Part shown: positions 2,297 to 64,000 of the stretch, piece by piece
How the letters are laid out: every line of letters starts with the position of its first letter
Position numbering within the stretch: the first letter of the stretch is position 1
Assembly: GCA_002104905.1 (NCBI GenBank)
Contig: MCFE01000274.1
Coordinates: forward strand, 41,866 to 105,865
DNA from: Basidiobolus meristosporus CBS 931.73
Lineage: Eukaryota; Fungi; Basidiobolomycota
Direction: 5' to 3'
Length of the DNA: 64,000 bases
Notes under the pieces: generated by a model
Database searches by the model: none
What the model saw: the letters and a program-made list of their open reading frames with translations, nothing else
What the model was told of the DNA's origin: nothing
Program-made: the position numbers and the translations under genes

Positions 2297-2297
2297 G

Positions 2298-3900: not shown

Positions 3901-3940
3901 ACTTGGCATATTCAGCATGCTGGTCTTACTGTGATCCCCT

Positions 3941-4010
3941 ATGAGAAATAATCATGATGATCTTGTCAAAAGGCGGTCACAAGATTCAAGTCCCATGACT
4001 AAGAGGTATT
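3941..4010. repeat. Right arm of ~70-bp inverted repeat (partner 2298-2367)
   Basis: See left arm; the motif gatc(c/t)tgtca recurs at 3959-3968 and 4011-4020. Confidence 0.75.
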
Positions 4011-6130: not shown

Positions 6131-6299
6131 AAATATGTATTCTACCTGCATATCCTGCTGGTCTCTGATTCTCATCAACCTTAATCTACCACCTATCTTA
6201 CAGCATCAAAGCAGAAATCTGATAGTAGTCTTTCTGGTTTCTGGGCCTTAATCACTATCCAGCCTGGCCAGCTACCTTTATCCACTGCTGAATGAATAT

Positions 6300-7400
6300 T
6301 GTATGATTTCCAGCAGAACACTACTAAATGGCCATCATATCAGAGCTCATATTAATGTCTGCATTAGAGATACCCCAGCCATCAGCAAGATAGCTGGCTT
6401 TTCTGGGCACAATGGATGGTATTGCTGTCAAACATGTGAGATGCAGGGGATTTACTCCATAACTAACACTCATGATTATTATCCAAAACCAACACTAACA
6501 ACATCTTCTTCTCACTAAGATAATGTACCAAAGTCAGCATGTAATTGCAGCAAAGTTGGCAAGCTTTAAGTCATTGGCTGGAATATGGAATTAATTAGAA
6601 ACTGGAGATGCCAAAGATGGAAGGTATTTTTAGAGCAAAAGCTTTCCACTGGGAGCAATGCATTTGCTTATCAACAATATCCCTATTCTAATGACCTAGT
6701 TGTACATGGGGCATTTTAAGCTGAATGAGCCTTGTCAGATACCAGAGAAAATTGAAAAAATTGGCAAGATATTATGGAGTAACTGCTACCCAAAGTGCTT
6801 CTCATTGGCTCCAATCAAGATTCATATACATATGTAACAGTACAAATGCAAAGACTGGATGAACTGGATATATATTTATTCAAGTGGCCTTCTGAAGCCA
6901 TTTCAACCAAGTGTATATTGGATGCATTGGGAGTCATATGTGGACATTGTAGGAGTATTTATCCAAAAGCAGATCAGCAATGCCAACTTGTCACATCTAC
7001 AGCTTTTATGCAAGGAGTTTGTGACAGGATTTGAGCAGCTATATTACAAGCCTAAAGCTGAATGTGTAGATCTCTGCCACTACTGTATCCATTCTCTACT
7101 CCATCTTGCTTGGTGTGTGGACAATAGTGGGCCTTGTGTCCCCCTTTGGGAGTTTCCTATGGAGCAGATGCATGGGGAGATAGGAAGACAAGTCAAGTTG
7201 CAGGTACTACCATATCCCAATCTGATCAAGAACATTACCTTCAAGTCCATCATGGATGTGATGAGTTGGCACATAGAGGACAGCCAGAAGTGTTTGAAAA
7301 TGCTGAGGACAGATGTGCACATGGAGACACCTATACCTTTGGCATTGAGAAGCTAAGCAGCCCCAATGTGTGGGTAATCAGTTAAGTAATACAATGTTGG
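6300..7400 (+). pseudogene. Degenerate CACTA/EnSpm (CMC)-type transposase
   Basis: D-T-P-A-I-S-K-I-A-G-F-S-G-H-N-G-W-Y-C-C-Q-T-C motif and FEQLYY...C..H.LLHL.....GP...LWEFPME motif; stops and frameshifts between them. Confidence 0.75.
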
Positions 7401-7699
7401 GTTAGGCTCAGCAAGCAACTAATTCTTATTAGGACAACTTTACCAAAGTATGCTGGGTTTCTCTTGGTCACAAGCCAATTTCTACATCATTTAATACAGA
7501 ATTCACATAAACAAGTGCCAGAGCACACCTATAAGGGGGATAGAATCCAGCAGGGAGAAGGAATATACCAGCTAGAAACCAAGAAGTTCTTTGCAGATAT
7601 TCAGGAGGTATTTATGGCAAAAGTTGTGGCAACCAAGCATGAAGCTCATAGTTTAGGCTGACCAGGTAGGTAACTATTGCTTCATCACCAGTAGTTTTT

Positions 7700-7950
7700 A
7701 TGCCAACTGATTCCACTTCATTAACCATTATAGCACCTAAACATCACTTGAAGGTGTCTTCTAGTACCCTCCAGGCATTCTTTGCATTTTTGCACTTGTG
7801 CTTTGAATTTGCAATTTACCATTAGCATCAAGGCAAATGCAGTTGAAGGCACTTTGTGCACTCTTCTGGTACTTTAAGGCTACTTTTCTTACCCCTTCAG
7901 GAAGGTGTTCTTCTCCCATAGCCATATTCCAAAGACTTCATTCCTGTAAC
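7700..7950 (-). pseudogene. Possible copia gag fragment
   Basis: Reading ...GEEHLPE...AQSAFNCICL...AKMQKNAWRVLEDTF resembles the copia gag AW..L...F motif. Confidence 0.35.
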
Positions 7951-7953
7951 AGT

Positions 7954-8150
7954 TGTAAAAGTTTGTAATTCTTCCCAATATTCACCTAACCTAGCCACTT
8001 ACATCATTACCTACAAACCTTAGTGAATGCTGACCAAATTCCTTGTCAGGATTTATGTTGAATATTTTTCACCTGAAACAGCTGGTACACAGAGCATGAA
8101 AATTTTCAAAGTTGTCCATACTTTTTATGGCAGCTGAGCACAACATGTAA
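7954..8150 (+). mobile_element. Partial copia LTR (same family as 49.6-54.3 kb LTRs)
   Basis: Reverse complement aligns to 51790-51955; begins with TGT at 7954. Confidence 0.6.
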
Positions 8151-9509
8151 ATATTTCTCAAGGCATTCCAGATATCCTTTGCTTTTTAGCTTCTGAGCAT
8201 TGAGCCCACAACCTGCCCAAGATGTTCAGGATCAGAAAGTTGAAGATGCTTGGCACATCTTTTTGGTTGCTAGGAGCCACTTCTCCTGCATTGTTGCAAG
8301 TGCATTCTCTAGCAGGAATATGGCAGTGTCCCAATTCCTCAGGCATTGTATTTATCTTGACCTTCTATATGTTTGCACTTGTATCCACCCTACTATTCTG
8401 CATTGTGAAGATTCTGGTAGTATCTGTAATAGGCATTGCAGAAGGTGATGGCTCAAGTTTCATCACCTGCTGTGAGAGCCTTGGAGATATTGGAAGTAAT
8501 TAGGGGAACAAGCTAATTGGGAGGCTCTCACTCAATGATTTGTCAAAGACCAATGCATTACTTAGAGTCATAGATGGTATGGCCAAGATAAACACCCAAA
8601 GTGTGCTTTGGTAATTCTCCAGAGGATACATATAATGCTTGAGAGCTTTGGGCTACATATCAAGTATCAATACTCAGGGTTCTTAACAGTGTGATGAAAA
8701 CATCACAAGTAAAGCATGACAAATAACTTGGGTATTGAATAGTTAGGTTTATGAACTATGATCCAAATGACTAGGTTAATGGAGTATATAGGTGTATGAT
8801 ACAAAATCCAGATAAGTCAGAGTCTCATTTGTTTTTGGTTAACCGCTTCCAATACCATTTAATAGTATTATGATAGCCATCTAGTGATATTACTGCATCC
8901 ATCACTGTTCAGAAGTATCTTGAGTTAGCACGAATCAAAACAACCCTGATATAAACTCAGAGGTTGAAGAAATGACTATTGGCACTGAATCCTACTTGGG
9001 AACATAGTTGTGCTGTATGGATAATATACATTTCGAGTCTGCATAATAGATCGGATGATGCCAGTGCAGCGTAGCATCACACACAGGGCAGTCTCAGCAA
9101 TTGATGCCACAATAAGCCATCCAACACATCCAACCGCACTAACCGGAAAGGATTGCCATCAGTCAGGGGAAAAGGAGGGAAAAGAACTCCAATTGGCGGT
9201 ATTCCAGAGGGACGAACACATGGTACCATGGGAATTTCATACCTGAGGTGGAGCAGTGATTAGGCAGTAGTATGGCAGAACACTCCCAGTAGTATGGCTA
9301 GACACTTGCATCCCAATACCATGGATGGTTTTTCGATGCCTTACCACGAATTCCCAATCAATGTGATATGTGTGGTGGGAATCAGGATCGAACGATCACC
9401 AATCACCATTACGTCACTGCCAGGCCACCTCCCCTAAGCGGTGGACAATTCGTAATGCTACTTAAGTCCGGCTGGGGAACGATTGATTTCTGGTAAGAAA
9501 CGACCTAAC

Positions 9510-46495: not shown

Positions 46496-48481
46496 TTAGG
46501 ACGCGCTTTCTCGGGTTTGTATGCGGTTCTGGTGGCGGCTGGCGAGCCTCTGCGCTTCGTTCGTTAATTTCGTCAGCTTGTACGGAATCTGTGAATAGTG
46601 GCTTCTCATTTCCTCGTGGAGTTCTACCACCTGGACGAAGTTTCTTGTCTGAAAGCATTTCTCCATTAGCATACGATATGTATCTAGCTTGGGAGCTAGG
46701 CCCTCCTTCCGCATCTCCTGGTAGGTGGCCAACGAGGCCTCTAAATGGTCACTGGTTACTAAAGCGCGGATAAGCCCATGGTAAGTAATCGCGTCTGGTG
46801 CGGTCTCTGAAGATTTCATTTGGCCGTAGAGCTCCATAACTGCATCGACGTCAGAGTTCCACGAATAGGCGTTGATGAGGGTGTTGTAGGTGATGACGTT
46901 GGGTGCGATGTTTCGCGCTAGCATCTGTTGGAAAATGTCTGAAGCCTGCTTCAGATCGGCGTTCTTAACATGGGCATGGATCAATGAGGAGTAGGTGACC
47001 ACAGTGGGGGTGAGTCCGTTATCCAGCATTTGTTGGTAGAGTCTCATGACTTCCGAGGTGTTTGAGTGTTTGGCATATGCGTTGATTAGGCTGTTATAGG
47101 TCACCACGGTGGGTCGGACCTTGGTGATTGACATGTCTTCAAAGATCTGGAGCGCCTGGGCAGTGTCCAGATTCTTTACGCATCCATTGATGAGGCTGTT
47201 GTACGTGGAGGCAGATGGGACCTGCCTCTGTGATTTCATCGTGTTGTACATCTCCAGGGCTTTGTCCAGATAGGAGCTTTTGAGAAAACCATGAATAAGA
47301 TTGCAATATGTGGACGAGTCTGGCTCTATCTTGCGGATGAGCATGTGCTCATAGATGGTCAAGGCAGTCTCCATGTCGCGACGCTTCACGTGTGCATCGA
47401 TCAAGGTATTGTAGGTGATGACATTTGGCTTCACTTCAGATTCGCACATCTTTCGGTAAATCTCCATTGCTTTCTCCAATTTGTTCTGCCTGAGGTACAT
47501 GTTGATCAGGTTGGTGGCACTTATAACGTCCAACAGTATGTCCCGATTGGCCATCTCTTTCCGTAGCTCGGCTGCTCTTTCCATGTCAGAGGCCTTCACA
47601 AAGCCATCGATCAGCATGGTGTAAATCACCTCGTTGGCTGGAATCCCTTTTGCTTCCATGTCTTGGAAAATTCGCATAGCGCACTCCATACTTGAGTGTT
47701 TGATGTGCCCTTCGATCAGGATGCCAAAGGTAAACTTGTCAGGGCTTATCTGAGCCTTGACCATGTCTTCGTATATCTGGTTCATGAGGGCGAAATCACC
47801 GTGTTTGGCGCATATCTTCAGCAGCGAGTTGTATGTTATAAGGTTTGGTCGAATATTGTGACTCAGCATTTCCTTGAAGATTCGAAGAGCCTCGGCCGAG
47901 GAGACATTCCCGTATACACCCATGAGTTCACTGTACGCAACCGTATCGGGTTGGATGTTTCTGTCTTTCATTTGTTGGAAAACAGCCGCGGCCTGTTTGA
48001 CCAGGCCTATCTTTCCATAGTAAGAGAGTAGGGCACCGTATTCCCTGGAGGTTTTGAACACTGTATCCATCTGGAGCATGCAGTCGATGATTCTATCGCA
48101 CCTTTGACGGGTCTTCTCCTTCAGATCTCTGAAGCCGCTTGTTAGGCGCAAAAGCTTGGCAAACTGTTCTGACGATATCGTGACGCCCTGTTGATTTTTG
48201 ATGAGCGCCTCGAAGGTCTTCCAAGCCAATTCCTTGTCTCTGGCCTGAAGAGCAGCGTCTAGAGTACTCAATAGATCTCCCTCCTGACACTGGATACTGA
48301 ACGCTTCATTTTCTTGTAAAGCATATGACGGCGAATGCAGCTGGTATGTGCGAGTAAGTAACGGTCGATATGGGGATAGACTTCTGAAGCCGGAGAGGCG
48401 CACAGCGGTAACCCGGCTATGGAGATTACCGGTGGGCGACAGACGGATGGAAGTAACCAGGAATTTCCCAAGCTTCAGCAT
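46496..48481 (-). CDS. Pentatricopeptide-repeat protein, probably mitochondrial (~14 P-type repeats)
   Basis: Tandem 35-aa repeats (e.g. VITYNTLIDAHVKRRDMETALTIYEHMLIRKIEPD); Arg/Ser-rich N-terminus; intronless. Confidence 0.95.
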   Translation of the reverse strand: MLKLGKFLVTSIRLSPTGNLHSRVTAVRLSGFRSLSPYRPLLTRTYQLHSPSYALQENEAFSIQCQEGDLLSTLDAALQARDKELAWKTFEALIKNQQGVTISSEQFAKLLRLTSGFRDLKEKTRQRCDRIIDCMLQMDTVFKTSREYGALLSYYGKIGLVKQAAAVFQQMKDRNIQPDTVAYSELMGVYGNVSSAEALRIFKEMLSHNIRPNLITYNSLLKICAKHGDFALMNQIYEDMVKAQISPDKFTFGILIEGHIKHSSMECAMRIFQDMEAKGIPANEVIYTMLIDGFVKASDMERAAELRKEMANRDILLDVISATNLINMYLRQNKLEKAMEIYRKMCESEVKPNVITYNTLIDAHVKRRDMETALTIYEHMLIRKIEPDSSTYCNLIHGFLKSSYLDKALEMYNTMKSQRQVPSASTYNSLINGCVKNLDTAQALQIFEDMSITKVRPTVVTYNSLINAYAKHSNTSEVMRLYQQMLDNGLTPTVVTYSSLIHAHVKNADLKQASDIFQQMLARNIAPNVITYNTLINAYSWNSDVDAVMELYGQMKSSETAPDAITYHGLIRALVTSDHLEASLATYQEMRKEGLAPKLDTYRMLMEKCFQTRNFVQVVELHEEMRSHYSQIPYKLTKLTNEAQRLASRHQNRIQTRESAS

Positions 48482-49587: not shown

Positions 49588-49946
49588 TGTTGAGAATATC
49601 TTGCGATAAGAGTTTTGGAGATATTGGAAGTGATTGGGACAACAAGTAAATTATGTGGTTCTCACTTAATGACTTACTGAATGTAAAGATAGTATTTATA
49701 CTTTTACATGTTCTTGGCTGGACAAACATGTAGAATATGCTTAGGAAGGTTTGAAGAATATGCATGCAAAGTTTGGGGGGTTTTTGGACAACTTATCCAA
49801 ATTTCATGTTTGGGTACCTGATGTTATGGTGAAAATATTCTAAGTAAGTCCTGGCTAAGAGTTTACTCAGAGTTTTCTTGGAGCTGTAGGTAATAATCTA
49901 AATGACTAAGTTGAGTTAATATTTAGGTGTAACTACAAAATATACA
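49588..49946 (-). mobile_element. Copia LTR copy a, with adjacent polypurine tract
   Basis: TGTTG...TACA on the + strand; GGGTGGGAGCAT on the - strand abuts the TGT start; similar to copies b-e. Confidence 0.7.
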
Positions 49947-49988
49947 ATGCTCCCACCCATATAAACACTCATGTTAATTAGCCCTAAT

Positions 49989-50760
49989 TGTTGCAATATT
50001 CTGAGCAGTATTGGAAGTGATGTGGAGAACTAGAGGATTTACATGTTATTCACTTGTAGATTTATTGATCAAAAGTATGGTATTTATACTTTTGATAGAG
50101 TAGAGAAAAAAAATGTGCAGAGTTTGTTAAGAAAGATCCCAAGAATATGTGTGCAAAGTTTGGGGTCTTTTGGGCGACTTTGAGAAAAATAATAATCTGG
50201 GTACCTGACAATTTGGTGAAAATATTCCAAGTAAATCCCGACAAGTAATCTGGTCAGGACAGAATGCTAATCACAGTATAAGATCTATGTGACTAAGTTA
50301 GCATGAATATTTTGGTGACAACTCAATAATTACAACACTAATTGTGATCTAAGATATTCATATTTGTTACTAGCTAATGGATTGATAAATATGTCTGCAA
50401 TCATTTCATCTGTATGACAGTAGACTAAGCTAGCTAAACTATTCTCTATAGCCTCCCATACAAAATGATGTCAAAAACCTATGTGCTAAGTCCTAGCTTG
50501 AAAAGTGGGATTTCTACTTGATTATCTTGAAATCTTGTATTAGGGGCTTTTTGACATACATACTAGTGTCTAAAAAGCTTTCCTAGTCACATTGCTACTT
50601 TTGTAGCTTCACAGGCTGCCATATACTCTGCTTCAGTAGTGAAAAGTTCCACAGTTAGTGCTTTCTTGAGCTCCATGAAATTGCTCCTTTGCAGTCAGGA
50701 AAGGTGAATCCTCTAGTGGATCTTCTGTCATGGAAGCTAGGTTATCAAATCAGCATCAGA
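49989..50760 (-). mobile_element. Copia LTR copy b + truncated RNase H relic
   Basis: LTR from TGTTG 49989 to ~50334, then decayed MIADIF.KPL, ELSTTEAEY and GFSDAD motifs. Confidence 0.7.
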
Positions 50761-50841
50761 GAATCCCAAAAATTCCTGTTCTAATTCTTATAGATGTACT
50801 TTGAATAAATAGCAGCAGCTCTGCTCAAGTTTTCAAAAATC

Positions 50842-51440
50842 TGTTGTAAGAATCTTGGAGATATTGGAAGTGATTAAGAGAATCAGTAGATCATGAGGTT
50901 TTCACTTGCTGATATATTGAATGTAAAAGTAGTATTTATACTCTACATAGTACTGGCATAGAATATATGTAAAATATAGTAAGGAGGGTGCCAAAAATAT
51001 GTGTGCAAAGTTTGGGGCTGTTTGGAGAATTGGGAGAATACTGACCAAGATACTTGTTGGGATAAACCTAGTATATTTTCACTAAAACATCAGGTTCCCA
51101 GAATATTATAACTCTCAAAGACTTGTAGGTAAAGTACCAAGCAACCAAGCTAGAAGAATAGTCAAGTGGAATTATGTATTTTTAGAACACTCCTACTCAA
51201 CCAATTGTGCATACTGACTAGTCCTCATTGTGACCTAAGACATTTATATTTGTCTCCAGCTAATGGGTTGGTAATTATGTTGGCAATCATTTCATCTGTA
51301 AGACTGTAAGCTAAGCCAACCAGCTCTTCTCTATAGCTTCACATATGAAATGATATATAATATCTATGAGCTTAGTTAAAGCAATAAATTTTGGATCTCT
51401 ACCTATATGTATGCATCCTTCATTATCTTGAGATTGTAGA
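50842..51440 (-). mobile_element. Copia LTR copy c + short RNase H tail relic
   Basis: Same LTR motifs from TGTTG 50842; RNase H C-terminal relic at 51215-51440. Confidence 0.6.
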
Positions 51441-51499
51441 AAAACTTGTATTTACACCTAAATTTTCACTTAGCTTAGTTGCTTAGATTATTGCTTTAG

Positions 51500-51608
51500 A
51501 GTTAGGAGGGAGATAGTTGCCAATAGATTATGACTTTATTTCAGTTGAAACAAAAAAGTCAGCACTGCTGTTGCAGCTTAGATACAGAGTGTGTAGCAGA
51601 GGGGAATT
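51500..51608 (-). mobile_element. Decayed 3' end of the E2/E3-type non-LTR element, interrupted by a copia LTR
   Basis: Aligns to 59048-59160 (gttagg..ggagat/cagt...ctttatttcagttgaaacaaa...gagtgtgtagc.gaggggaatttg). Confidence 0.8.
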
Positions 51609-53868
51609 TGTTGTAAGAGTCTTGGAGATATTAGAAGTGATTGGGAGGGCAAGTAGATTAAGTGGTTTTCACTTAATTATTTATTGAATGTAAGAGTAGT
51701 ATTTATACTTTTACATGGTCTTGGCATTACAAACACGTAGAATAGGTTAAGGAAGGTCCCAAGAACATGTGTGCAAAGTTTGGGACTGTTTGGACAACTT
51801 ATCTAACTTTCATGTTCTGAGTACCTGGTATTTTGGTGAAAATATTCTAAGTAAATCCTGACAAGAAATTTGATCAGTATTCTCTAGGATTTGAAGGTGA
51901 TGATCTAAGTGACTAAGTTGGGTGAATATTTAGGTTGAATTACAGATTTCTACTACACTCCTGCTCAGCTAAATGTGCACATTGACTAGTCCTCATTTTG
52001 ACCTAAGATATTCATACTTGTCTCTAGTTAATGGTTTGGTAAATATATCTGCAATCATACCATCTGAAGGACAGTAAACTAAGCTAACTAAGTTACTCAC
52101 TATAGCTTCACATATGAAATGATGTCTCATATTTATGTGCTTAGTTCTAGCATGAAAGGTTGGATTTCTACATAATTGTTTACATCATTGATTATCTTGA
52201 AATAAAGTAATTAGTGTTTTTTGACATAGGCCTAAATCTGTAAAAAGCTTTCTTAACCACATTGCTTCTATTATAGCTTCACAGGTGGCTGTATACTCTG
52301 CCTCTGTGGTAGAAAGTGCTATGGTTGTTTGCTTTCTTGAATTCCATGAAATTGCTCCTTTACAGTGAAGAAAGGTGTATCCTGTGGTGGATCTTCTGTC
52401 TTCCAAGTTTTTCCCCAATCAGCATCAGAGTATCCCACAAGATCCTGTTCTGAACTCTTATAAGTGTATCTTGAGCAGATATCAGAAGTTCCTTTTAGGT
52501 ATCTAAAAATCAGCTTAACTGCTGCATACAATCAGATCCATAGTTCTGATTATGCTGGCTGACAACTCCCACTGAATATGAGATATCTGGATTGTTCAAA
52601 GCATGATATAAATCAGAATACCTACCATAGATTGATAAGGAAAGTCAGGGCTTTCAGATGGCACCTAGCTCTCTTGATTTGGCTGAGTTTTGACCAAGTT
52701 AGGGTTTGTCTCCATTAGGGTAGCTGCCAGTTTACAGTCTTCCATTTGGTACTTCTTTGGTATATCTTGAATATACTTGGATTGTCTTAGGTAATTGTCT
52801 GGGTACTTCTATCTATGGAGAACTTAATCCCTAAGTAGTAACTGAGTTCTCCTCAATTGGACATCTTGAACTCCTTAGATAGGCTGGATTTAGTCTCTTC
52901 CAATGTTGCTAGGTTATTGGTGGCTATAATAAGATCATCCAAATATTGAGCTAATAGAACTGGATTTGCTCTATCTGGCTTATAATATATACTATAGTCC
53001 GCATTACTCCTTTGGAAACTCAAAGATTCCAAAAAAGTATCTATCTTTCAATTCCAGGCACTTGGTGATTATTTGAGACCATAAAGAGACTTTTTAAGCT
53101 TGCAGACCAAGTGGGGGTTATCATGGTCAACAAACCATCAGGCTGGTCCATATACATTTCCTCATCAGGTTCTTCATTTGAAATGCTGTTCTGTCATCCT
53201 TTTGATGAATAAAGAACTCATATCTAGCTGCAATAGCCAATATTAATCTGATGGAATTAAACCTGGCCACCAATGCAAATGTCTCAGTATAGTCAAGTCC
53301 TTTTGTTTGAGAGTATCCTTTGGCCACAACTCTTGCTTTCTATCTCTCAATTGTACCATCAGTCTTGTATTTTGACTTAACGACCCATCTGCATCCAATT
53401 GATTATTAATTGATTGGTAATTTGACCAAGTCCCAAGTTTGATTTTCAATCAGGGCCTGATATTCCTGAGTCATTTCAGATCTCCAAAACATTGTCTGAA
53501 GGCTATTTAGGGCCACTTTTACAGTCTGGGGCTCATCAATATGGACTGAATAGGCATAGGCTAAGTTTGTACCCTCATTGATATTGTATTTGGGCTATTT
53601 CTTGTCCAATTGGATCTCCAGGCATCTAATACTGGAATGATCACTTCTGGGTTATTCCTGGGCACTGCATTAGGCTAAACCATGGTTATAGAGTCCTCTG
53701 GGGTGAAAGGATTTTGATTATTTTGCTCAGATTCAATCCTGACAATTGGTGGACTTTTGATCAGATTTCTTTCATCATCTGAAGTCATTTTTTGTGAAAA
53801 TTTTGAATTTTCATCAAACAAGACATCCCTGTACTTGATAAGACTCTTGGCTTTGGTATTGTAGAGTC
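51609..53868 (-). mobile_element. Copia relic: LTR d + RNase H + RT + integrase C-terminus; 5' part missing
   Basis: AKGYSQTKGLDYTETFA, IFRYLKGT, VGYSDADWG, ALSTTEAEY and RLYNTKAKSLIKYRDVLFDEN; many stops. Confidence 0.9.
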
Positions 53869-53917
53869 TTAGGAGAGGAAAGTCACCAAGTGGTGAAATC
53901 TTGATTTACCTATGACT
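53869..53917 (-). mobile_element. Minimal 3'-terminal fragment of the non-LTR family
   Basis: TTAGGAGAGGAAAGTCACCAAGTGGTGAAATCTT, same terminal hairpin as E1. Confidence 0.75.
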
Positions 53918-54266
53918 GTTGTAATTATTGAATTGTCACCTAAATACTCATGCTAACTTAGTCACATAGATTTTATTCTGTGATTAGCATTTTGTCCTGA
54001 CTAGATTTCTTGTTGGGATTTACTTGGAATATTTTCACTAAATTGTCAGGTACCCAGATTATTTTTTTCTCAAAGTTGTCCAAAAGACCCCGAACTTTGC
54101 ACACTTATTCTTGGGACCTTCCTTAACAGACTCTACACGTTTGTTTCCTCTACTTTATCAAAATTATAAATACCATACTTTTGATCAATAAATCTACAAG
54201 TGAATAACATGTAAATCCTCTAGTACTCCACATCACTTCCAATACTCCTCAGAATTTTGCAACAAT
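53918..54266 (+). mobile_element. Copia LTR copy e (opposite orientation)
   Basis: Near reverse complement of 49989-50334. Confidence 0.75.
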
Positions 54267-54578
54267 GACAAGTATCTAAAGAAGTCAAGTTAATCTGAAG
54301 CTATTACTAGAAAGCTAGGTCTAAGAGATATCTTCCTGGTAAGCCAGGTCTGAGAGTTGAGAGGCTGAGTGGTACTATATTTGCTAGTTAGCTAGGTCTG
54401 AGAGAGGTTTCCTGGAAAGCCAGGCCTGAGAAGGGGGAATCTGAATATATCTGAGGTCAGTTGTACTGGTTTGCGGTAGCTGAATTGTGGCTGTAATGGC
54501 CAGAGGACTGAGGGGACTGAGGGGAATTTCTTGGCAATCACTGGCCAGATTAACTAGGCAAATCTGACCAATTAGCAC

Positions 54579-54792
54579 TTAGGGGGGATGATCATCACCA
54601 AAGGGTGAAATCTTTATTTAAATAATAAATAAAGAAGCCAAGTTTGAATATGAATATCTGAGATGCAGGAAGCCTACAAGATAAACTTGGACTTTGCTGT
54701 ATCCCAAATATCCTCAATATCAAAGTCTAGAGGAGAGTGTAGCAAGACTGCTTGTTCACTGTAGTATTTCTTGAGGAAGTTTGTGACTTGAA
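54579..54792 (-). mobile_element. E0: ~215-bp 5'-truncated non-LTR element (third subfamily)
   Basis: Same terminal motif (TTAGGGGGG..TCACCAAAGGGTGAAATCTTTATTT..AAAGAAGCCA) and an ORF tail ending ...WDTAKSKFIL*. Confidence 0.7.
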
Positions 54793-54883
54793 GGGTTAGG
54801 GGAGGGAAAGTCACCAAGTTGGTGAAATCTTTATTTGAGTTAAGAACTAATCTAAGTACAAATAAAGAAGCCAATTAAGAGGT

Positions 54884-57733
54884 CTAGAACCTCTCTAATA
54901 AGTAATCCAATTTATGTTTTGTTTCATCTCTAATGTTTGTTTCAATAAAGTGAAGCTCATCAGAGGTAAATATAAAATTCAGGGGTTTTGGGGGAAGTAC
55001 AAATTGTAGATGTTTCTGATCAATATAATCCAAGACTGGAACCCAGCCTGGAATTAGGTGTAGTAGGAAAGGTGTGTGGACTTGTAAGTAGCTCTGCCAC
55101 ATTGATCTTAGATGGTCCTGAGCCAGTAGTCTTGGTTTCTCAGCTTTTTGAAGTTTTGAAGCAAGCTCTGTTACTACAGCAGAGCCAACCAGGGTGTGCC
55201 AGCAAGAAGATCTCAGGGAGGAGTTAGATTGAAGCCATTGTTTGATGGAGGGGTTATGTGATTTCTGAAGTTTGACTAGGAAGGAAGCACAGAGATAGAT
55301 CATTTGGATTTGGTATGGGTAGAACCCAAAAACTCCATTAGTTGCATGGATATAGGGAGATACTGGAAGATAAGGTACCAAGGATCTGATACACTGATGG
55401 AGAAATTTATCCAGGCGGTGAAGTTCTCTGGAGGTTAGGGGTATAATGTGGAGACCAAATTCAAGTACCGGCAGTACATACTGCTTCAGAAGTATAGGGA
55501 TCTTTTGAATTGGAGTGTCTGGAGTGACTACTACCAGAAGCTTTTTGAGAGCCTGTTGGGCAAGACGGATCCTATTATTCAGGTGGAGCTTTGAGTCAAT
55601 CCCATGTTGACAAAACGGCAGACCTAGATATATTGCAGTTTGTTGTGGCAGAATGCTAGTGTTCTGTATAGTTGTAGTGCACCCAATTGGGACTGTCTTG
55701 GAAATTGAGAGTGAGAGGTTGTTGGCAGCCAAGTACTTCTCAATGATGGCAGTGTCTGCTATGGGCTTAGGAGTAGCAATCTTGATATCATCCGCATAGA
55801 GAGTTAGTAGTGGATAGGGAGAGTCTGGTGAGGGGCCTTTTGGAAATAAAGGAAAGTCGTGTAGGAATATCACAAATAGTAAGGGACCTAGTACAGATCC
55901 TTGGACTACTCCATTTGGAACCTCATAAGTCTCTGATGTACAACTTGGATGCAAAATTTTGGCTGAGTTCTCACAAAATAGAGAACGTACAAGAAGGGTC
56001 ATTGGTAGTGTGGTAACTGCTAATAGCTTTCTCCAAAGCAGAGCTCTGTCCACAGAGTCAAAGGCTTTAGTAATGTCAAACAGAATGGTTGGCAATGAGA
56101 ATTGAAGTGAATGATCATGGCTTAGCACTACAGCCATATCCAAGGAGAGTTTAGGCAAGAATCCAAACTGGGAAGGATGGAATGGATATAGTTGAGATTG
56201 CAAGGATCTTGCTATTATAAGCTCAAATATTTTCCGGCAGGTTGGTAGGAGCAAAACTGGCTGGTAAGAACCTGGGAGTGAGTGTTTCCCCTTCCCTTTG
56301 TATAAGGGTATAACATTTGCCTGTGACCAGGCCTTTGGGGTAGTCAATTGTTGGGCACAGATAGAGTAGAATGGGAGAAGTAAGTGACTCATTTTGGAGT
56401 AGCACACCCGGAGTAGATCGTAGGTAATCAAGTCATGTCCAGGTGCAGTATTTGCAGGAAGCTTCTTTAAAATTTTCTCCAGAAGCTTTGCTGAAACCAA
56501 AATTGGAGATGTTGGACTGCTAGATATGTTACCAGTATGGTAGAAAGGAGGAGTGGGATGCACAGTTGAATCAAAGAATATAGGGGCCAGTTTGTCTGGT
56601 GATGGTATACTCCTTGCTTGGGGTCTCATGGCTTTGTATACTCTTGATATAGACCTTGTGGTGGCATTCATATTTACTAAGGGCAAGGTATCCATGATAT
56701 GAGCCCATAATCTAGTATGCTCAGTGATCTGTAGTGACTTGGAGTAGGAGATTGCGCTTTCCAGGAGGTTCTGTGTTTTTGGGTTAGGGAAACATAGGTA
56801 GCTGGAATTTAAGGCAGAAATGATGGATTTCCATTTAAGTTGGTTTGCAGATGGCTTTTGGTAGGACTTGGTGGGCAGGGCCAGACAGCCAGTGATTATG
56901 ATGAAATGCTGGTAAAATAGCCATAATGCATTTACATCATCACAAATCCATGCAGGTAAGCTGGGAAATGCATATTCTGTAAGCAAGGATAGGTAGTTGG
57001 CAAAGTCCTGTGTCTGTGATACTGAAGCTTTGGCTGGCAGGATTGTAAATGGCTGAAGAAGGGTGCCAATTGGTAGGGTTTTTCTGGCAGAAATGATAAT
57101 ATGTATTGGCTTGTGATCAGATTTCTCTAGTGAACCACAGCTGATATCCTCTGGAATGCTTGTAACCTGGTGGATGTACTGTAAGGCAGCAGGAGTAGCT
57201 GTTACCCAGTCAACACAACGTTGAGCTTGCTGAGTGTTTACAGTGACCAGATGGTTTTGTTGGAGGAACTTTGTAAAGTGCTCCTCTTGGGTTCCAAGTC
57301 TGGATGAAATAGTGGTGATATTTTCAGGGTGGGGAATATTTATATCTCCCACTACCATACAAGGGATTGATGAGCTGTTAATGAATTCTGATGTGGCCAA
57401 GAAAATTGCCAGTGTTATGGAGTTAGACAGAGATGGAGGGAGATAGATAATAATGGCTACTATAGTTGGAAGTGTTAGAGCATAGCAGTAATATCCATAG
57501 ATGATGGATACATTTGCTGAGGGTGCAAGCTTAGAAGATGAAAGAGCAACAAGTGCCATTGAGTGAGCTGGGAATTTTGGGTGAGCAGATGAATATGCAT
57601 TCAGTCTAGAGGGAAGTTTTGGCAACTTAACATCAATTAGTAGGATCAAGGAATATTCCTTTTTCAGTAAGTTTTCTAATTCAGCTACAGTTGGAGTGAT
57701 GGAGTTGAAGTTGAGTAAGAGTATGTTCTGTAG
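54884..57733 (-). CDS. E1 ORF2: APE-type endonuclease + reverse transcriptase, intact, no initiating ATG
   Basis: LLNFNS, IYLPP, GDINIPH, CVDWV and SDH (endonuclease); APG.D.ITY, QFGF, FDITKAFDSVDR, GVVQGSVLGPLLF, YADDI and YLG (RT). Frame opens directly after the ORF1 stop. Confidence 0.92.
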   Translation of the reverse strand, partial: LQNILLLNFNSITPTVAELENLLKKEYSLILLIDVKLPKLPSRLNAYSSAHPKFPAHSMALVALSSSKLAPSANVSIIYGYYCYALTLPTIVAIIIYLPPSLSNSITLAIFLATSEFINSSSIPCMVVGDINIPHPENITTISSRLGTQEEHFTKFLQQNHLVTVNTQQAQRCVDWVTATPAALQYIHQVTSIPEDISCGSLEKSDHKPIHIIISARKTLPIGTLLQPFTILPAKASVSQTQDFANYLSLLTEYAFPSLPAWICDDVNALWLFYQHFIIITGCLALPTKSYQKPSANQLKWKSIISALNSSYLCFPNPKTQNLLESAISYSKSLQITEHTRLWAHIMDTLPLVNMNATTRSISRVYKAMRPQARSIPSPDKLAPIFFDSTVHPTPPFYHTGNISSSPTSPILVSAKLLEKILKKLPANTAPGHDLITYDLLRVCYSKMSHLLLPFYSICAQQLTTPKAWSQANVIPLYKGKGKHSLPGSYQPVLLLPTCRKIFELIIARSLQSQLYPFHPSQFGFLPKLSLDMAVVLSHDHSLQFSLPTILFDITKAFDSVDRALLWRKLLAVTTLPMTLLVRSLFCENSAKILHPSCTSETYEVPNGVVQGSVLGPLLFVIFLHDFPLFPKGPSPDSPYPLLTLYADDIKIATPKPIADTAIIEKYLAANNLSLSISKTVPIGCTTTIQNTSILPQQTAIYLGLPFCQHGIDSKLHLNNRIRLAQQALKKLLVVVTPDTPIQKIPILLKQYVLPVLEFGLHIIPLTSRELHRLDKFLHQCIRSLVPYLPVSPYIHATNGVFGFYPYQIQMIYLCASFLVKLQKSHNPSIKQWLQSNSSLRSSCWHTLVGSAVVTELASKLQKAEKPRLLAQDHLRSMWQSYLQVHTPFLLHLIPGWVPVLDYIDQKHLQFVLPPKPLNFIFTSDELHFIETNIRDETKHKLDYLLERF

Positions 57734-59047
57734 TCAGGCAGACTCTGAGGTTGCCTGTTCCTGCTGAAACTCTTGCACTGCCCTTTGTAAATTTCCAGAA
57801 TTATTCCACAACTCTTCAAATGGAGCTTGCGTAATGTCTTTCAGGATTCTAATTGCTTCCTCTTTCAAGAAGTAGGCCACATCATAGGTTGGAGCCTGTT
57901 TCTTAATGGCAGCAAAGAGAGCCATAATTGCCATGTGAGCTGGGGGCTTGTTGAATATTCCTGGCTCAGTGTCCATTGACTCTGGTGGAATGATTGTGAA
58001 TTTGGTAGGCACCCAGTTTAGATTTTTTGCCAGATACTTAGTCAATGCAGTGGAGAAGTTTCTGTCTACAATCATTTCTAGGATCTTTCCTCTTCTCCAA
58101 GCTAGGTTAACAATTTTGAAGTGTCAATATTTAGAGAGCGGAATGTATGTCTGATGTTTGATATAGTAGTCCATGGAACATTGGCAAAGTATAGCAAGGA
58201 CCAATTCTGGAGCTGAGGTAAGTTTGCTGGAGGCTTATAGGTAGACTTCCTGGCCGGTTGTGTGGTAGGCTTTAGTGTTTCCAAGGTAGCAAGTTGTGGT
58301 TGAGACTTTTTGGAATTACGTATGACTTTGGAAAGAATTCTGCCAGCAACTGTGTCAGGAATGTTAGTACTCATTGATGGTGCAGGGCCTGGCTCCTGGT
58401 ACTGCTTTTGTAGAATACTTGAGTATGTCTCTTTTTGTTTTCCTTTATCCAATGTGCTATGCCTTGGAATGGGATTTTGGGGAATAGAGACTTCAGGTAT
58501 CAACTCTGGGGTCTGGGGATTGTCCAACATTGTTGCTTGAGCTTCCAGCTTTTCCTCTAAGATTTGAACTCTCTGCTTAAGCTCATCATTTGATGCTATA
58601 AGTGTTGCATTGTTTGGAGCCAGGTCAGGTGTTGAGTTATGAAGGCAGGTTGAGCAGCGTTCTAACTCCTTTGTTTGGTCATCCAACTTTTCATCTAAGG
58701 TTTGAACCCTAAATTTGAGTGCACCATTTGAGGTTAGAAGCTCCAAGTTATCAGCCTGCAACTTCTTTAGATCCCTAAATATCTCAAATATCTGTGCCTG
58801 CAAGTCTTTAGCAGTGATATTTCTGATGGGTACTATTTCCTCTAGGAGTTCTTCTTGAGCCAGGTGAGCATTGGGACTTGAGCACTCTACTGAAGGAGTT
58901 GCTGGAATTTCCTCAATGTCTGACAAAACTCCTTCACTTGCAGCATCAGTTGTATGATTATCCTGAGTAGCAGCAACAACCTCAAGTTCACAAGGACCAG
59001 TTAAAGTAAAACATCTCTTGGGTGGGACTATCTCAAGAGGCTTAGGT
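57734..59047 (-). pseudogene. E1 ORF1 (coiled coil + RRM-like), 5'-truncated, 1-nt frameshift at ~58115
   Basis: Track ORFs 58102..59073 and 57734..58075 join into a homolog of E2 ORF1 (YKPPANLP, VPWT.ISNIR, IVNLAWR.GKILE, NKPPAH, KQAP.YDVAYFLK). Confidence 0.85.
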
Positions 59048-62000
59048 GGGTTAGGGGGGGAGACAGTCACCAACAGGTGAAATCTTTATTTCAGTTGAAA
59101 CAAAGAAGCCAGTGCTACTGTTGTAGCTTTGATACAAGAGTGTGTAGCTGAGGGGAATTTGTAGGTAAGTTAATAAGAAGTGATGATAGTTCTTCAGTGC
59201 TCAAGACACTGTTCAGTGGGAAGGGGGGTAGCAAGAGAGGTAAGAATGACTTGTGAACAACATTAATGAGGGGAATGTGATAAGGATTGATATTCATCAT
59301 AAAGGGAGTGTGCTGCTGCAGATATTGCTGCCAAAGGTCTGTCAAGTACTTCAGGTAGGCCAGCTTGGGTTTTTCTGACTGCAGAATAAATTCAGCAAAC
59401 TTCTTGACTTCAGGATCTCCAAGTATAGTTCTCCAGCAGGAGCCAGGTGTTGTGTGGTGTGTTCTCTTCCAGGCCTTAATCAGTGGGTTGTTGCAGTTGT
59501 GAAGTCTGAGGTATAATCTGGTTCTAAGGTAGAGAAGTCTGATCTTATAGGGCATAAACCCAAAAGCACCAAGAATAGCATGTCTGTAGGGGCATTCAGG
59601 CAAATGAGGCACCAAGGAGGTAATGCACCATACTGCAAACTTGTCAAGCTTAGTGCAGTCTCTAGAAGTAAGAGAGAGAAGTGGTAAGCCAAATTCCAGG
59701 ACAGGGAAGACAAACTGCTTGAGTAGAAGGAGGCAGCTGGGAGCTGAAGTTGTAGGAGGAGTAACAGCCAGTAGCTTGTGGAGTGCCTGTCTTGCCAGGA
59801 TAATTCTCTTCTTCAGGTGTGCTCCAGAGTCTAGTCCAGTAGGAAGGAAAGGAAAGCCAAGATATGTAGCAGAAACCTGAGCAGGTAGAGTGGAGTTCTC
59901 CAAGTTGATGGGAGAGCCCAAAGGTACTGTCTTTGCAATGGAAAGCTGGAGATTATTCTTCTGCAGATACTGGTGGATGGTCTGGGAGTCTTGTTGCACA
60001 TTGGAGGAGGATATTCTGATGTCATCAGCAAAGAGAGTAACCAGGCAGTCAGCTGAGAGTCTTGGGAAATCATTCAGGAAGATGGCAAACAGTATAGGAC
60101 CAAGCACAGAGCCTTGAACCACTCCATTAGGAACTGAGAACACAGCTGATTGCTCACTTGGGTGCAGAATTCTTGCTTGTGGATCCAGAAACAGAGACCT
60201 GACAAGGAGGGTGAGAGAGGTACTGGAGAAGCATTGCAACTTGGACCAAAGCAGATTTCTGTCAACTGAATCAAAGGCCTTAGTAATATCAAACAGAACT
60301 GAGGGATACTTGCACTGGAGAGAGTGATCTTGGCTAAGTATGACTGCATATTCCAAGGAGAGGCCAGGAACAAAGCCAAACTGTGCAGGATGAAACTTGA
60401 GGGAGTCAGAGTAGAGCTCCTGAGCAAGCAGAAGCTCAAACACCTTTCTGCAGGTGGGCAGCAGAGATATTGGCCTGTAGGAGCTAGGATCCAGGTGCTT
60501 TCCTTTACCCTTGTACAGTGGCAGAACATTTGCAAAGGACCATTCCTCAGGAGTAGAAAGCTGGGCTGAGCATTGCTGAAACAGTGGAAGCAGAAGTGCA
60601 GACATGGCCTTGGTACTAGTCTTCAGAAGCTCATAGGAGATTGTGTCCACACCTGGAGCAGTAGAGTTGGGAAGCCTCTTGAGCACATTATGGATTCTCC
60701 TTTGATCAAGTGCAAGTGGGATGGGCAGAGTCTTGAAGTCAGGATGAAAGTCAGGAGTTGAGTACTGCTTTGTAGAGAAGAAGATGTTAGCCAACTGTTC
60801 TGTTGAAGGTAACTTCCTGGAAGAGGGCCTCATTGCCCTGTAGCAGTCTTGATACTGTTCTTGTTATAGAGTTGGAAGATTGCAGAGGCAAGGAACTCAT
60901 AATATGATCCCAGAGCTGAGTATGCAGAGTGTGGTGAATTGCCTTGGAGTGGTGTATGCTGTCAGGAGGAGTTTCTCTGTTTTTGGGTTAGGGAAACTCA
61001 GGTAGCTTTGTTGCAGGGCTGAAACAATGGATTCCCATTTTCTTGAGGTAACAGCAGTAGTCTTGCATGGCAGTGAGAGGGAGGCAGACACCAGAATCAG
61101 ATGCTTCACAAAGAGCCAGGCATAGTTGAGATCAATCTGGCAGAGAAAGTAGCAAACTGGCAAGCTTCAAGTAGTTCCCAAAGTCTTTCTTCTGATTCTT
61201 GGTAGCTTTGTGGGTGAGCACAGTAAGTTTTGGCAGCTTCTTCTTCACAACTGGTTGCATAGAAAGGGACCAGGCTGGGTGGTCAGAGGCTCTCAAGGAT
61301 CCTAGCTCAGCTCCAGAGAATTGCTTAACTTCATTCACAAAGTAGAGGGCAGCAGCAGAAGGGCAGATCCAGTCAACACATCTTTTCTCAGATTGAGCAC
61401 CTAGTGCTAGCAGATGGCTTTCTCTCAGGAAGTTCAGTAGGAATGTAGACCTTGGCTTCATTCTTGCAGTCAGAGTAGTCTTGTTCTCAGGATGGGGAAT
61501 GTTGAGATCTCCAAGCAAGATAACAGGTGTCTGATATAGATTGCTGGTATTGCTGAACTTTCTGGCATATAACTTGCACTTCCTGAAGGAGAGACTTGGA
61601 GGCAGATAGCAGAGCACCAGACTGATAGTTGGCAACTGGAGAGCAGCACAGTAAGGGGAGTAAAGAGGAACACAGAGCTGAGGAGTATTGATGGTAGAAG
61701 AGATGAAGCAGATAGAGGAGGTATTCTTTGTTCTAGGAGTAGAAAAGCAATATAGATTAGTCAAAAGTATAGAGGGTAGCTGGACATCAATCAAACACAG
61801 GAGGGAAAATCTTGAAAGAAGTCTCTCTAGAGTTGGTCTTGATGGCTGTATGCTGTTGCAGTTAAGCAACAGAACTTCAGGTAGTCAGGCAGAGGTTGTA
61901 GCTTCTTCAGAGGCAGCATTGACAATGTGACCTGCAGAGTCCCAGAGCTCTTCAAATGGTGCATCACTTAAGTCAGCAAGGAGGGAAATGGCATGGTTCT

Positions 62001-62699
62001 TGAGGAAGTATGCCACATCATAGGAGGGGGCTTGTCTCTTGATGGCAGCAAAGAAAGACAGAATGGCAACATGGGCTGGAGGCTTGTTGAACAGTAGAGA
62101 GTCAGAGGATTCAGATTCTTCAGGCACTATCTTGAAGTCAGTTTTCAGCCAGTTAAGGTTCTTCTCCACAAAGGCAACAAATGGGTCAGCAATGTTTTGG
62201 TCTAGGATAACCTCCAGAATCTTCCCTTTTCTCCAGGCCAGGTTGACAATTCTTGAGAGCTGAATATTGCATGCCTTGAGTGCTTTCCTGATGTTGGAAA
62301 TGGGAGTCCAGGGAACTTGCTTCAAGTACACCACAGTCCAGGTAGAAGCTGGTGGTAGGTTTGCTGGGGGCTTGTAAGTCCTTCTGTGTGGCAATGGAGC
62401 TGCAGTAGTCAGATTGGAGTCCACATTCTCAGTAGAGGGTTTTCTTGATGTGTCTTGCTGAATGGTACTGGAGCTGGATGTGCTGATAATTCTTGCTAGA
62501 ACCTTGCCTGCATAAGTCTGAGGTATAGCTGAGGTGACTGTAGAGGTGGTGGCAGCTGGTGCAGGTGGAGAGGCAGAAACTGAAGCAGGAACTGAGGTCA
62601 CCTGGGAGAAGACAGTAGAAGCAGGTTTTCTGGGAGGAACAGAGTTCACTATCCAGTTGTTCTGTAAAACACTGGAGTAGCTTTCTGTGGAACAGAATC
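59048..62699 (-). mobile_element. E2: non-LTR retrotransposon, second subfamily, 5'-truncated within ORF1
   Basis: ORF1 61885-62699; ORF2 59115-61884 with about three frameshifts (~61140, ~60930, ~60845); the RT part 59115-60833 is intact. Confidence 0.9.
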
Positions 62700-64000
62700 T
62701 TAGGGTTAGGGGGGGGAGACAGTCACCAACAGGTGAAATCTTTATTTCAGTTGAAACAAAGAAGCCAGCACTACTGTTGTAGCATTGATACAAGAGTGTG
62801 TAGCTGAGGGGAATTTGTAGGTAAGTTAATAAGAAGTGATGATAGTTCTTCAGTGCTCAAGACACTGTTCAGTGGGAAGGGGGGTAGCAAGAGAGGTAAG
62901 AATGACTTGTGAACAACATTAATGAGGGGAATGTGATAAGGATTGATATTCATCATAAAGGGAGTGTGCTGCTGCAGATATTGCTGCCAAAGGTCTGTCA
63001 AGTACTTCAGGTAGGCCAGCTTGGGTTTTTCTGACTGCAGAATAAATTCAGCAAACTTCTTGACTTCAGGATCTCCAAGTATAGTTCTCCAGCAGGAGCC
63101 AGGTGTTATGTGGTGTGTTCTCTTCCAGGCCTTAATCAGTGGGTTGTTGCAGTTGTGAAGTCTGAGGTATAATCTGGTTCTAAGGTACAGAAGTCTGATC
63201 TTATAGGGCATAAACCCAAAAGCACCAAGAATAGCATGTCTGTAGGGGCATTCAGGCAAATGAGGCACCAAGGAGGTAATGCACCATACTGCAAACTTGT
63301 CAAGCTTAGTGCAGTCTCTAGAAGTAAGAGAGAGAAGTGGTAAGCCAAATTCCAGGACAGGGAAGACAAACTGCTTGAGTAGAAGAAGGCAGCTGGGAGC
63401 TGAAGTTGTAGGAGGAGTAACAGCCAGTAGCTTGTGGAGTGCCTGTCTTGCCAGGATAATTCTCTTCTTCAGGTGTGCTCCAGAGTCTAGTCCAGTAGGA
63501 AGGAAAGGAAAGCCAAGATATGTAGCAGAAACCTGAGCAGGTAGAGTGGAGTTCTCCAAGTTGATGGGAGAGCCCAAAGGTACTGTCTTTGCAATGGAAA
63601 GCTGGAGATTATTCTTCTGCAGATACTGGTGGATGGTCTGGGAGTCTTGTTGCACATTGGAGGAGGATATTCTGATGTCATCAGCAAATAGAGTAACCAG
63701 GCAGTCAGCTGAGAGTCTTGGGAAATCATTCAGGAAGATGGCAAACAGTATAGGACCAAGCACAGAGCCTTGAACCACTCCATTAGGAACTGAGAACACA
63801 GCTGATTGCTCACTTGGGTGCAGAATTCTTGCTTGTGGATCCAGAAACAGAGACCTGACAAGGAGGGTGAGAGAGGTACTGGAGAAGCATTGCAACTTGG
63901 ACCAAAGCAGATTTCTGTCAACTGAATCAAAGGCCTTAGTAATATCAAACAGAACAGAGGGATTCTTGCTCTGGAGAGAGTGATCTTGGCTAAGTATGAC
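62700..64000 (-). mobile_element. E3: non-LTR retrotransposon nearly identical to E2; runs off the right edge
   Basis: 62703-64000 matches 59048-~60343 with only about ten differences counted by eye; RT ORF 62771-63895+. Confidence 0.92.

Follow-up and report, generated by a model that had tools for sequence, protein, structure and literature searches.

A candidate chromosome-end retrotransposon array with telomere-repeat tails in the fungus Basidiobolus meristosporus

An array of co-oriented elements and a sister array beneath a telomere

We analysed a window of 64,000 nt from Basidiobolus meristosporus CBS 931.73 (assembly GCA_002104905.1) that makes up the last 64 kb of the 105,865-bp contig MCFE01000274.1 and whose distal part is an array of long interspersed nuclear elements (LINEs), retrotransposons without long terminal repeats (LTRs), that end in telomere-like repeats. 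Direct reading, repeat analysis and self-BLAST of positions 53869-64000 resolved five such elements, all co-oriented on the minus strand and mutually abutting, and we found neither poly(A) nor spacers between elements in this array. Window position 64000 is the final base of the contig, in the same orientation, and the array reaches the contig end inside the element named E3. The initial annotation had described a minus-strand head-to-tail array without spacers or poly(A), with differing 5' truncations and a telomere-like repeat at the junctions, and each of these features was found where it had been placed. Its division into pieces held only in part: five termini are present, the piece at 53869-54578 is a single short element split by a solo LTR, and the element called E0 is a fragment of a family with only the first open reading frame (ORF1). 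From the contig end inwards, the array consists of the following features, truncations being judged against a full-length copy at positions 4223-8775 of region L136 on contig MCFE01000243.1; APE and RT denote the apurinic/apyrimidinic endonuclease-type and reverse transcriptase domains, and UTR an untranslated region.

62700-64000, minus strand: E3, the 3' 1.3 kb of an E2-family LINE (partial RT and 3'UTR), cut by the contig end
62700-62716: tail of E3, reading TTAGGGTTAGGGGGGGG on the plus strand
59042-62699, minus strand: E2, a 3.64-kb LINE, 5'-truncated and with broken ORFs; tail at 59042-59060
61885-62697, 61132-61869 and 59115-60833: C-terminal part of ORF1, APE and RT of E2, respectively
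54793-59041, minus strand: E1, of a second subfamily, 4.24 kb, 5'-truncated inside ORF1; tail at 54793-54803
54579-54792, minus strand: E0, a 207-bp 3' fragment of an ORF1-only family; tail TTAGGGGGG at 54579-54587
53869-54578, minus strand: Em1, a short noncoding element of ~360 bp that has the 3' hairpin and tail of the LINEs, lacks its 5' part and is interrupted by a solo LTR
51496-51611, minus strand: relic 3' end of an old, decayed LINE of the E2 type, lying farther in than any other relic of the array; remnant of the tail: AGTTAGGAGGG

The window elements share a conserved 3' end made up of AATAAA, a hairpin, a run of C and 0.5-2 CCCTAA units. Read on the sense strand, AAATAAAGATTTCACC is separated by a short loop from GGTGA, and a few bases on come four to eight C in a row and then 0.5-2 units of TAACCC/TAA; on the plus strand, the 3' termini begin at 62700, 59042, 54793, 54579 and 53869, and each gives the telomere-like repeat, a G-run and the motif GTCACCAA..GGTGAAATCTTTATTT. 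The repeat is present at all five element termini of the window and at ~35 termini at other loci. As a bare hexamer TTAGGG is not enriched in the window (28 observed vs. 29.7 expected), and the signal therefore lies in its position at element termini. The decayed GTTAGG noted earlier at 51501 turned out to belong to the relic 3' end at 51496-51611, which is 82-83% identical to 62700-62818 and 59050-59162. A telomere-like GGGTTAGGG also occurs inside ORF2 of E1 (56784-56796) and of E2 (60988-61000); we rejected it as a junction, as its complement encodes the conserved peptide FPNPKT and it is thus a coding coincidence.

The relation of such arrays to the telomere is seen directly on contig MCFE01000243.1. 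Its terminal stretch (L136 1-198) consists of 33 perfect CCCTAA units, the C-strand having its 5' end outward, and TTAGGG, which had been assumed to be the host repeat, is therefore the telomere repeat of B. meristosporus. The telomere tract is followed directly by a 45-nt E2 3' end with a tail of its own and then by a 9-kb mixed array consisting of an E2, two Em1, a complete E0, the full-length E2 and another Em1. An array thus lies directly under the telomere on this contig, with the LINE cDNA strand continuous with the telomeric G-strand and the element 5' ends distal, which is the polarity that had been predicted. The 33 units cap the array, so that the elements do not replace the telomerase repeats; we infer that telomerase is active, that it capped an eroded LINE end and that the system coexists with it.

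We fetched six further regions of the genome (L005, L006, L007 together with L136, L008, L009 and L010; position 1 of L007 is position 9066 of L136 in record coordinates, and both lie on MCFE01000243.1), giving with the window seven contigs. The loci were reached through annotated gene models overlapping LINE pieces and form a small, biased sample. All six share the architecture of the window array: E1, E2, Em1 and E0 are intermingled, and three more families, Y, Z and Z2, occur among them; the initial annotation had counted three or more subfamilies, and at least seven families in fact take part. Across the seven contigs we counted 28 termini of the hairpin type and ~10 of the Y/Z type, each on the sense strand and on the same strand as its neighbours, and found no tail on the opposite strand. 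The 5' side of the elements points toward the contig end, or the telomere, in seven of seven contigs. Single-orientation head-to-tail arrays with 3' ends toward the centromere, the arrangement of the Drosophila HeT-A/TART type, are therefore present in all seven. The 5' ends themselves range from full length to 45 nt, the truncation positions in E2 being 241, 460, 1358, 1533, 1844, 2504, 2671, 2708, 2805, 2848, 3153, 3274, 3540, 3580 and others, and since they vary by copy, most junctions represent independent events. Relatives in other sequencing runs (L011 and L012) have the same terminus and are again in tandem. On this evidence, the array in the window is probably the inner part of a chromosome-end retrotransposon array, to which copies would have been added at eroded ends beside telomerase.

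Element families and their proteins

The families comprise the autonomous E1, E2, Z and Z2, the ORF1-only E0 and the short noncoding Em1 and Y. The full-length E2 copy on MCFE01000243.1 consists of a 5'UTR, ORF1, ORF2 and a 3'UTR, and in a full-length relative of 4512 bp from another sample (L003) the 5'UTR measures 192 nt, while ORF1 and ORF2 encode 491 and 896 aa, respectively. ORF1 starts with an N-terminal Cys motif, followed by a coiled coil and a conserved C-terminal domain. In the window, E3 (62712-64000) is 99.2% identical over 1.3 kb to E2 (59048-60344) and has its RVT_1 match within 62771-63895, while E2 lacks ~895 nt relative to the full-length copy. E1 shares ~66% nucleotide identity with the E2/E3 subfamily and lacks the 5'UTR and the start of ORF1, of which remnants are found at 58102-59040 and 57734-58075; its ORF2 frame is open for ~947 codons (54884 to ~57726) and covers APE and RT. 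The nearest homologues of E1 are P0001 (64%) and P0002/P0003 (43-45%), and 98% identical E1 copies lie in L005 and L006.

The E0 fragment is 99.5% identical to L136 4006-4212, the end of a 976-bp element between two tails, and the ORF of that element resembles the LINE ORF1 (27% identity, E 4e-15). Em1 is 91-95% identical to L007 1-185 and 12750-13065, and more copies are found at L136 2497-3228 and 8902-9298. The longest Em1 copy opens (L136 2399-2440) with a GGTTCAAATCC-containing stretch that by eye resembles a tRNA B-box, and Em1 might be a tRNA-derived short interspersed nuclear element using the LINE 3' end; ARAGORN and Rfam searches of the telomere-proximal array (Rfam on L136 1-9400, E up to 0.1) gave no match. 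Y, Z and Z2 have only the tail in common with E1, E2, Em1 and E0:

Y: noncoding, at least 0.9 kb, with 155-bp repeats at the 5' end; 3' end ...CACCTACA followed by CCCTAA units
Z and Z2: ORF1 (530 aa), an ORF resembling APE and an RT ORF (747 aa); 3' end AATAAAGTATCTAAAAG with CCTAACCC units after it

Z and Z2 are autonomous and more distantly related to E1/E2. Copies of Y (L008 1-1141, L006 6184-7060 and L005 11027-11493) keep their CpGs and contain a palindrome of telomere-like motifs around GAATTC, and in four of four cases Y lies directly upstream of an E2 fragment.

With a non-LTR RT, two ORFs, variable 5' truncation and no LTRs, the elements have the properties of LINEs. RVT_1 was matched in E1, E2 and E3 (E 6.5e-18 to 1.4e-25; motifs QGSVLGP and YADD), and the best PDB sequence match of the RT is that of human L1 ORF2p. 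The endonuclease domain sits N-terminal to the RT in ORF2, where Pfam matches are weak (P0003 at E 7e-5, P0001 at 27.5 bits with the cut-off at 27.4, and a weak match in E2). PDB sequence searches with ORF2 and a profile of its N-terminal part returned only the RTs of L1 and R2 and one marginal ExoA match, and a fold search was therefore needed to confirm the domain. The AlphaFold (AF2) model of the N-terminal domain had a predicted local distance difference test score of 87.8, and Foldseek matched it to ExoA, the TRAS1 endonuclease and APE1 at E ~1e-10, TRAS1 being the closest LINE endonuclease structure (TM 0.63-0.71). The motifs N, YxPP, GDxN, D and SDH are retained across families and species. 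ORF2 carries a LINE RT and, as modelled, an APE-fold endonuclease; the fold model and the motifs support the earlier proposal of an APE-type enzyme distinct from that of the Magnaporthe element MoTeR. RNase H and a C-terminal CCHC motif were not found in the LINE ORFs by eye and Pfam. Close relatives occur only in Basidiobolus (B. meristosporus and B. ranarum) and a few other sequencing runs (among them ERR14127551, ERR14042384 and ERR14127404), everything else being at most 37% identical, and the cluster members of ten distant RT matches carry no clade name that would place the elements in a named LINE clade.

All five pairs of the 3' hairpin are invariant and so give no covariation support. 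The 16-mer AAATAAAGATTTCACC occurs at at least 120 loci in JGI metagenome contigs, all of them chance matches and none with the hairpin and tail. Across 54000-64000 the GC skew of the plus strand is strong (+0.21 to +0.28). This strand is antisense to the LINEs and runs on into the telomeric G-strand; it is rich in G, and every window junction has a G-run beside its TTAGGG units. A parallel is found in other telomeric retrotransposons, for which a strand-biased G-quadruplex potential has been reported (PMC10088271). We also compared the CpG content of window positions 53870-64000 and 1-8000 with that of 8000-48000, and included L136 1-9000 and 4223-4425. The observed/expected ratio is 0.00-0.16 in LINE arrays (0.04 in the window array), 0.08 in the Ty3-like region at the left end of the window and 0.83 in genes, while the 5'UTR of the full-length copy (L136 4223-4425) retains several CpGs. 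As copies that are ~99% identical already lack CpG, the source elements themselves must have been CpG-free, and the pattern suggests long-term cytosine methylation of the element bodies with an unmethylated promoter.

Proposed addition of copies at chromosome ends and its alternatives

The predicted transcripts of all families end in one to three C-strand telomere repeats, and for the E, E0 and Em1 families the RNA 3' end would consist of an AAUAAA signal, a 5-bp hairpin, a C-run and the repeat tail. New copies would be reverse-transcribed onto the 3' end of the G-rich strand of a chromosome that had lost, or nearly lost, its telomere tract, with the ...CCCUAA(G) end of the RNA pairing over 0-4 nt to prime the reaction. 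The 5' end of the added copy would then be trimmed by terminal erosion and afterwards be recapped by telomerase or receive the next element. The priming step, including the pairing of the RNA 3' end with a TTAGGG 3' end, is a proposal read from the sequences. Internal junctions contain 0-3 repeat units, with a maximum of 3 across ~35 junctions, and given the lack of a long telomere tract, addition seems to take place at telomere-less ends, as a form of healing, rather than at normal telomeres. At junctions with a reference copy for the older partner, the breakpoint overlaps the incoming tail (TAAG) by 0-4 nt, for example at CCCTATAAG inside E2. In 18 of 25 different tails, G comes next after the closing TAA, compared with 17% G on the sense strand (P = 2.5e-7); examples in the window are 62699/62700, 59041/59042, 54578/54579 and 53868/53869. 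In most of the cases tested, with two exceptions, this G belongs to the older element, and it would fit an RNA ending in ...CCCUAAG or a preference in end processing or nicking.

As a measure of age, we used divergence from the E2 consensus over the last 490 bp and listed the copies from distal to proximal. The values are 1.0, 4.5 and 8.6% in L006 and 0.8, 0.8 and 1.8% in L005; in L009, where a 97%-identical fragment lies distal to both copies, they are 8.6 and 14.9%. In the window, the young E3, E2 and E1 are distal to the 83%-identical relic at 51.5 kb, the sole strongly decayed relic there. Wherever ages differ, the older copies are thus proximal, which fits addition at the distal end and is not predicted by insertion into resident tails.

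The alternative closest to this reading, in our judgement an unlikely one, is that the APE domain nicks the G-strand of TTAGGG-like DNA, at the telomere base or in resident tails, where the CCCUAA tail would pair, and that arrays grow by insertion as with TRAS/SART or microsatellite-targeting LINEs. The conservation of the APE fold and of the N, Y, D-N, D and D-H motifs across families and species agrees with it, as does the similarity of the modelled domain to the telomere-specific TRAS1; breakpoints tend toward TAAG-like or CCCTA-like sites such as CCCTATAAG in E2, and the G after TAA could mirror a nick-site preference. Insertion into telomeres should, however, leave long internal tracts, whereas no junction of the ~35 exceeds three units, and the 5' part of the resident element is expected upstream of the insertion, whereas the missing 5' part of a truncated element was never found beyond its neighbour, which argues against simple endonuclease insertion into resident copies. 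Tail insertion would, moreover, give no age order or place the newest copies proximally, contrary to the order observed.

Recombination clearly contributes to the arrays. In L005 (11492-13296), two tandem 499-bp E2 3' fragments with identical truncation (E2 position 3153, internal CCCTATAAG) lie immediately downstream of a longer one, truncated at E2 position 2848, which gives a 3' terminus every 499 bp; the tandem could result from duplication or from repeated priming at one telomere-like site. In addition, an 11-kb block is common to three contigs at 98-99.6% identity. Short simple-repeat tails are, besides, common in LINEs with a conserved 3' hairpin. One could thus suppose that the arrays arose mainly by unequal crossing-over, break-induced replication or segmental duplication of a few old insertions and that the motif is an ordinary LINE tail, but recombination cannot explain the many unique junctions: most differ in truncation point and neighbouring family, tails in three unrelated contexts (the hairpin type, Y and Z) have arrived at the exact host telomere repeat, and the orientation is uniform relative to the telomere and contig ends. 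We regard recombination as the main source of the arrays as improbable. Still less credible is an assembly artefact, in which the collapsing or chaining of repeat reads would have produced false tandem arrays where contigs end. Contigs do end inside repeats (E3 in the window, Y in L008 and a repeat-bearing gene in L005 and L009), yet the same junction grammar is seen in seven contigs with distinct partners and recurs in independent short-read assemblies of other samples (L003, L011 and L012), and one array is anchored between unique genes and the telomere tract.

Some observations do count against addition at chromosome ends. The endonuclease domain matches the RT in its degree of conservation, although an element primed only at chromosome ends could do without it, and it leaves room for a nick-dependent route; the metal-binding Glu of its 'ET' motif is Asp in the E families and Glu in Z. 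In the window contig and four others, the end falls within repeats and no telomere is seen. A terminal array is thus seen on MCFE01000243.1, where the telomere lies directly on the array, while the window contig stops inside E3 and its array would be terminal by analogy. The copies on MCFE01000243.1 are ~99% alike, with a flat divergence of ~1% and no age gradient, and, with loci reached through gene models, dispersed internal copies may exist as well. Finally, gene-bearing DNA ('blk') is distal to some arrays (L005, L007 and L009), and recombination or transduction therefore also shapes these ends. The DNA in question is part of the 11-kb unit shared by three chromosome regions (L007 240-11731, L005 1-11026 and L009 1-10767) and consists of a 6.5-kb block, CpG-normal and with ordinary-looking genes (encoding a secreted Cys-rich protein of 186 aa and proteins of 100 and 142 aa), followed by a Z-family LINE. 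Homology stops exactly at the Z tail, with different sequence beyond it at each locus, and in L007 the unit begins immediately after an Em1 tail. Either 5' transduction of host genes by a LINE or a shared subtelomeric block could account for the unit.

A more far-reaching version of the chromosome-end reading, which we put forward tentatively and rate slightly below an even chance, is that a lineage of APE LINEs independently evolved a telomerase-like RNA 3' template, diversified into a consortium resembling HeT-A/TART, with autonomous, ORF1-only and short noncoding members, and repeatedly rebuilds eroded or broken ends beside an active telomerase, and may carry host genes by 5' transduction, as in the blk-Z unit.

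Comparison with known systems and the bordering sequences

Retrotransposons at chromosome ends are known in a few scattered lineages and are central to ideas on the relations between telomerase, Penelope-like elements (PLEs) and LINEs and on the loss of telomerase in Drosophila. Drosophila has no telomerase, and its array junctions are oligo(A). Its HeT-A, TART and TAHRE elements are Jockey-clade LINEs and resemble the present ones in forming mixed head-to-tail terminal arrays with 3' ends centromere-ward and variable 5' truncation, in pairing an autonomous element with a partner coding only for Gag/ORF1 (here E0) and in the mode of terminal addition that we infer. Unlike them, the Basidiobolus arrays are in a fungal host, are capped by (TTAGGG)33 and have templated telomere-repeat units at their junctions. 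The TRAS and SART elements insert into long telomeric tracts and carry poly(A) tails. Those of Bombyx, in the R1 clade, and Tx1-1_ACar of the anole are telomere-confined APE LINEs whose hosts keep telomerase (PMC10088271). The Basidiobolus elements share with TRAS/SART the APE-type LINE structure and, in the model, the nearest endonuclease fold, but they differ in lacking poly(A) and in abutting each other with only 0-3 repeat units in between, and so do not belong to this type.

Athena and Coprina are endonuclease-deficient PLEs in which reverse-complement telomeric repeats at the RNA 3' end pair with the G-overhang, and their 5'-truncated copies are found at chromosome termini alongside telomerase (PMC8557442). 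Basidiobolus element 3' ends likewise carry reverse-complement telomeric repeats, but the elements of rotifers, fungi and others have a PLE RT, no endonuclease and hammerhead ribozyme motifs, whereas those described here have a LINE RT, an APE fold and two ORFs. A search of L136 1-9400 for hammerhead or other Rfam ribozymes (E up to 0.1) gave no match, which together with the APE domain speaks against membership of these PLEs. The fungal telomeric LINEs known to date, MoTeR of Magnaporthe, FoTeR of Fusarium and Cnl1 of Cryptococcus, are CRE-clade elements whose single ORF carries a restriction-like endonuclease (REL) at its C-terminus; TAACCC repeats come after the sense 3' end and a short telomeric motif is present at the 5' junction (PMC12857005). 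They resemble the Basidiobolus elements in being fungal and telomere-associated and in having TAACCC after the sense 3' end; they differ in that three to eight repeats follow the element and all hosts are Dikarya, while in the Basidiobolus elements, which occur in Zoopagomycota, the APE is N-terminal and both an ORF1 and a conserved 3' hairpin are present. The two ORFs and the N-terminal APE fold speak against the CRE clade, although no explicit search for the REL motif was made. Cnl1 was considered as an APE-type precedent and rejected, as the literature puts it in the CRE/REL clade.

A review of telomeric retrotransposons covers SART/TRAS, GilM/GilT, Zepp, MoTeR1, Tx1-1_ACar and Athena and none from early-diverging fungi (PMC10088271). 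The host, B. meristosporus, is such a fungus, as the initial annotation had supposed, and literature on Basidiobolus with telomere or retrotransposon terms likewise gave no description, in line with its remark that no such system was known there. While the mode of life is known, the combination of an APE LINE, a telomere-repeat tail and ORF1-only and noncoding partners under a telomerase cap is new, as is the fungal phylum. It joins two known solutions, LINEs that keep an APE (TRAS/SART and TART) and a predicted RNA end that equals the host telomere repeat (Athena/Coprina). The elements would be a fourth, unrelated type of fungal telomeric retrotransposon and extend the phenomenon to Zoopagomycota, and a culturable fungus would provide a model for asking whether a LINE RT is primed by the chromosome end, what role the endonuclease has and whether arrays buffer telomere loss.

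Proximally, the window array is bordered by remnants of copia-type elements, and a solo LTR of this type has inserted into it:

53917-54264, plus strand: solo copia-type LTR of 348 bp (TG...CA) inside Em1, flanked by the 5-bp duplication ATGAC (53912-53916 and 54265-54269)
51608-53868, minus strand: decayed, 5'-truncated copia-type element with RT, RNase H and 3' LTR; ORF fragments with YLDDLII and RNase H motifs

The solo LTR does not belong to the LINE system. It matches 49987-50337, in inverted orientation, at 92% identity and shows an ordinary integrase-type insertion after the array had formed. The Em1 tail TTAGG at 53869 adjoins the broken 5' end of the copia element at 51608-53868, which forms the proximal border of the young array. 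Another, independent copia copy, cut 230 bp away, is likewise joined to a CCCTAA-type tail, CCCTAACCCTAA, at L007 16402-16414. The whole interval 49600-53868 consists of stacked, decayed and co-oriented copia 3' fragments that each finish in a complete LTR, with ~70-92% identity among them. Being co-oriented and 5'-truncated, the fragments (49.6-53.9 kb) were considered as retro-copies made by the LINEs; we rejected this because their complete LTRs match the extent of the solo LTR with its target-site duplication, and they are therefore DNA-level remnants.

Further inside the window, the genes are a usual fungal set, including Gti1/Pac2, Mcp5_PH, Suv3, RdRP and PPR, the last at 46496-48481; an exact match of the PPR protein places the window on its contig. 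In L009 (10770-11400), a tandem satellite with an 86-bp period and at least seven units, each holding CCCCTAACCTA, lies between the Z tail and the next element. In L006 (10790-18266), five tandem genes for CHAP-domain proteins of 181-231 aa lie just proximal to the LINE array; the CHAP domain is typical of bacterial cell-wall hydrolases, and the family may have been horizontally acquired and subtelomerically amplified.

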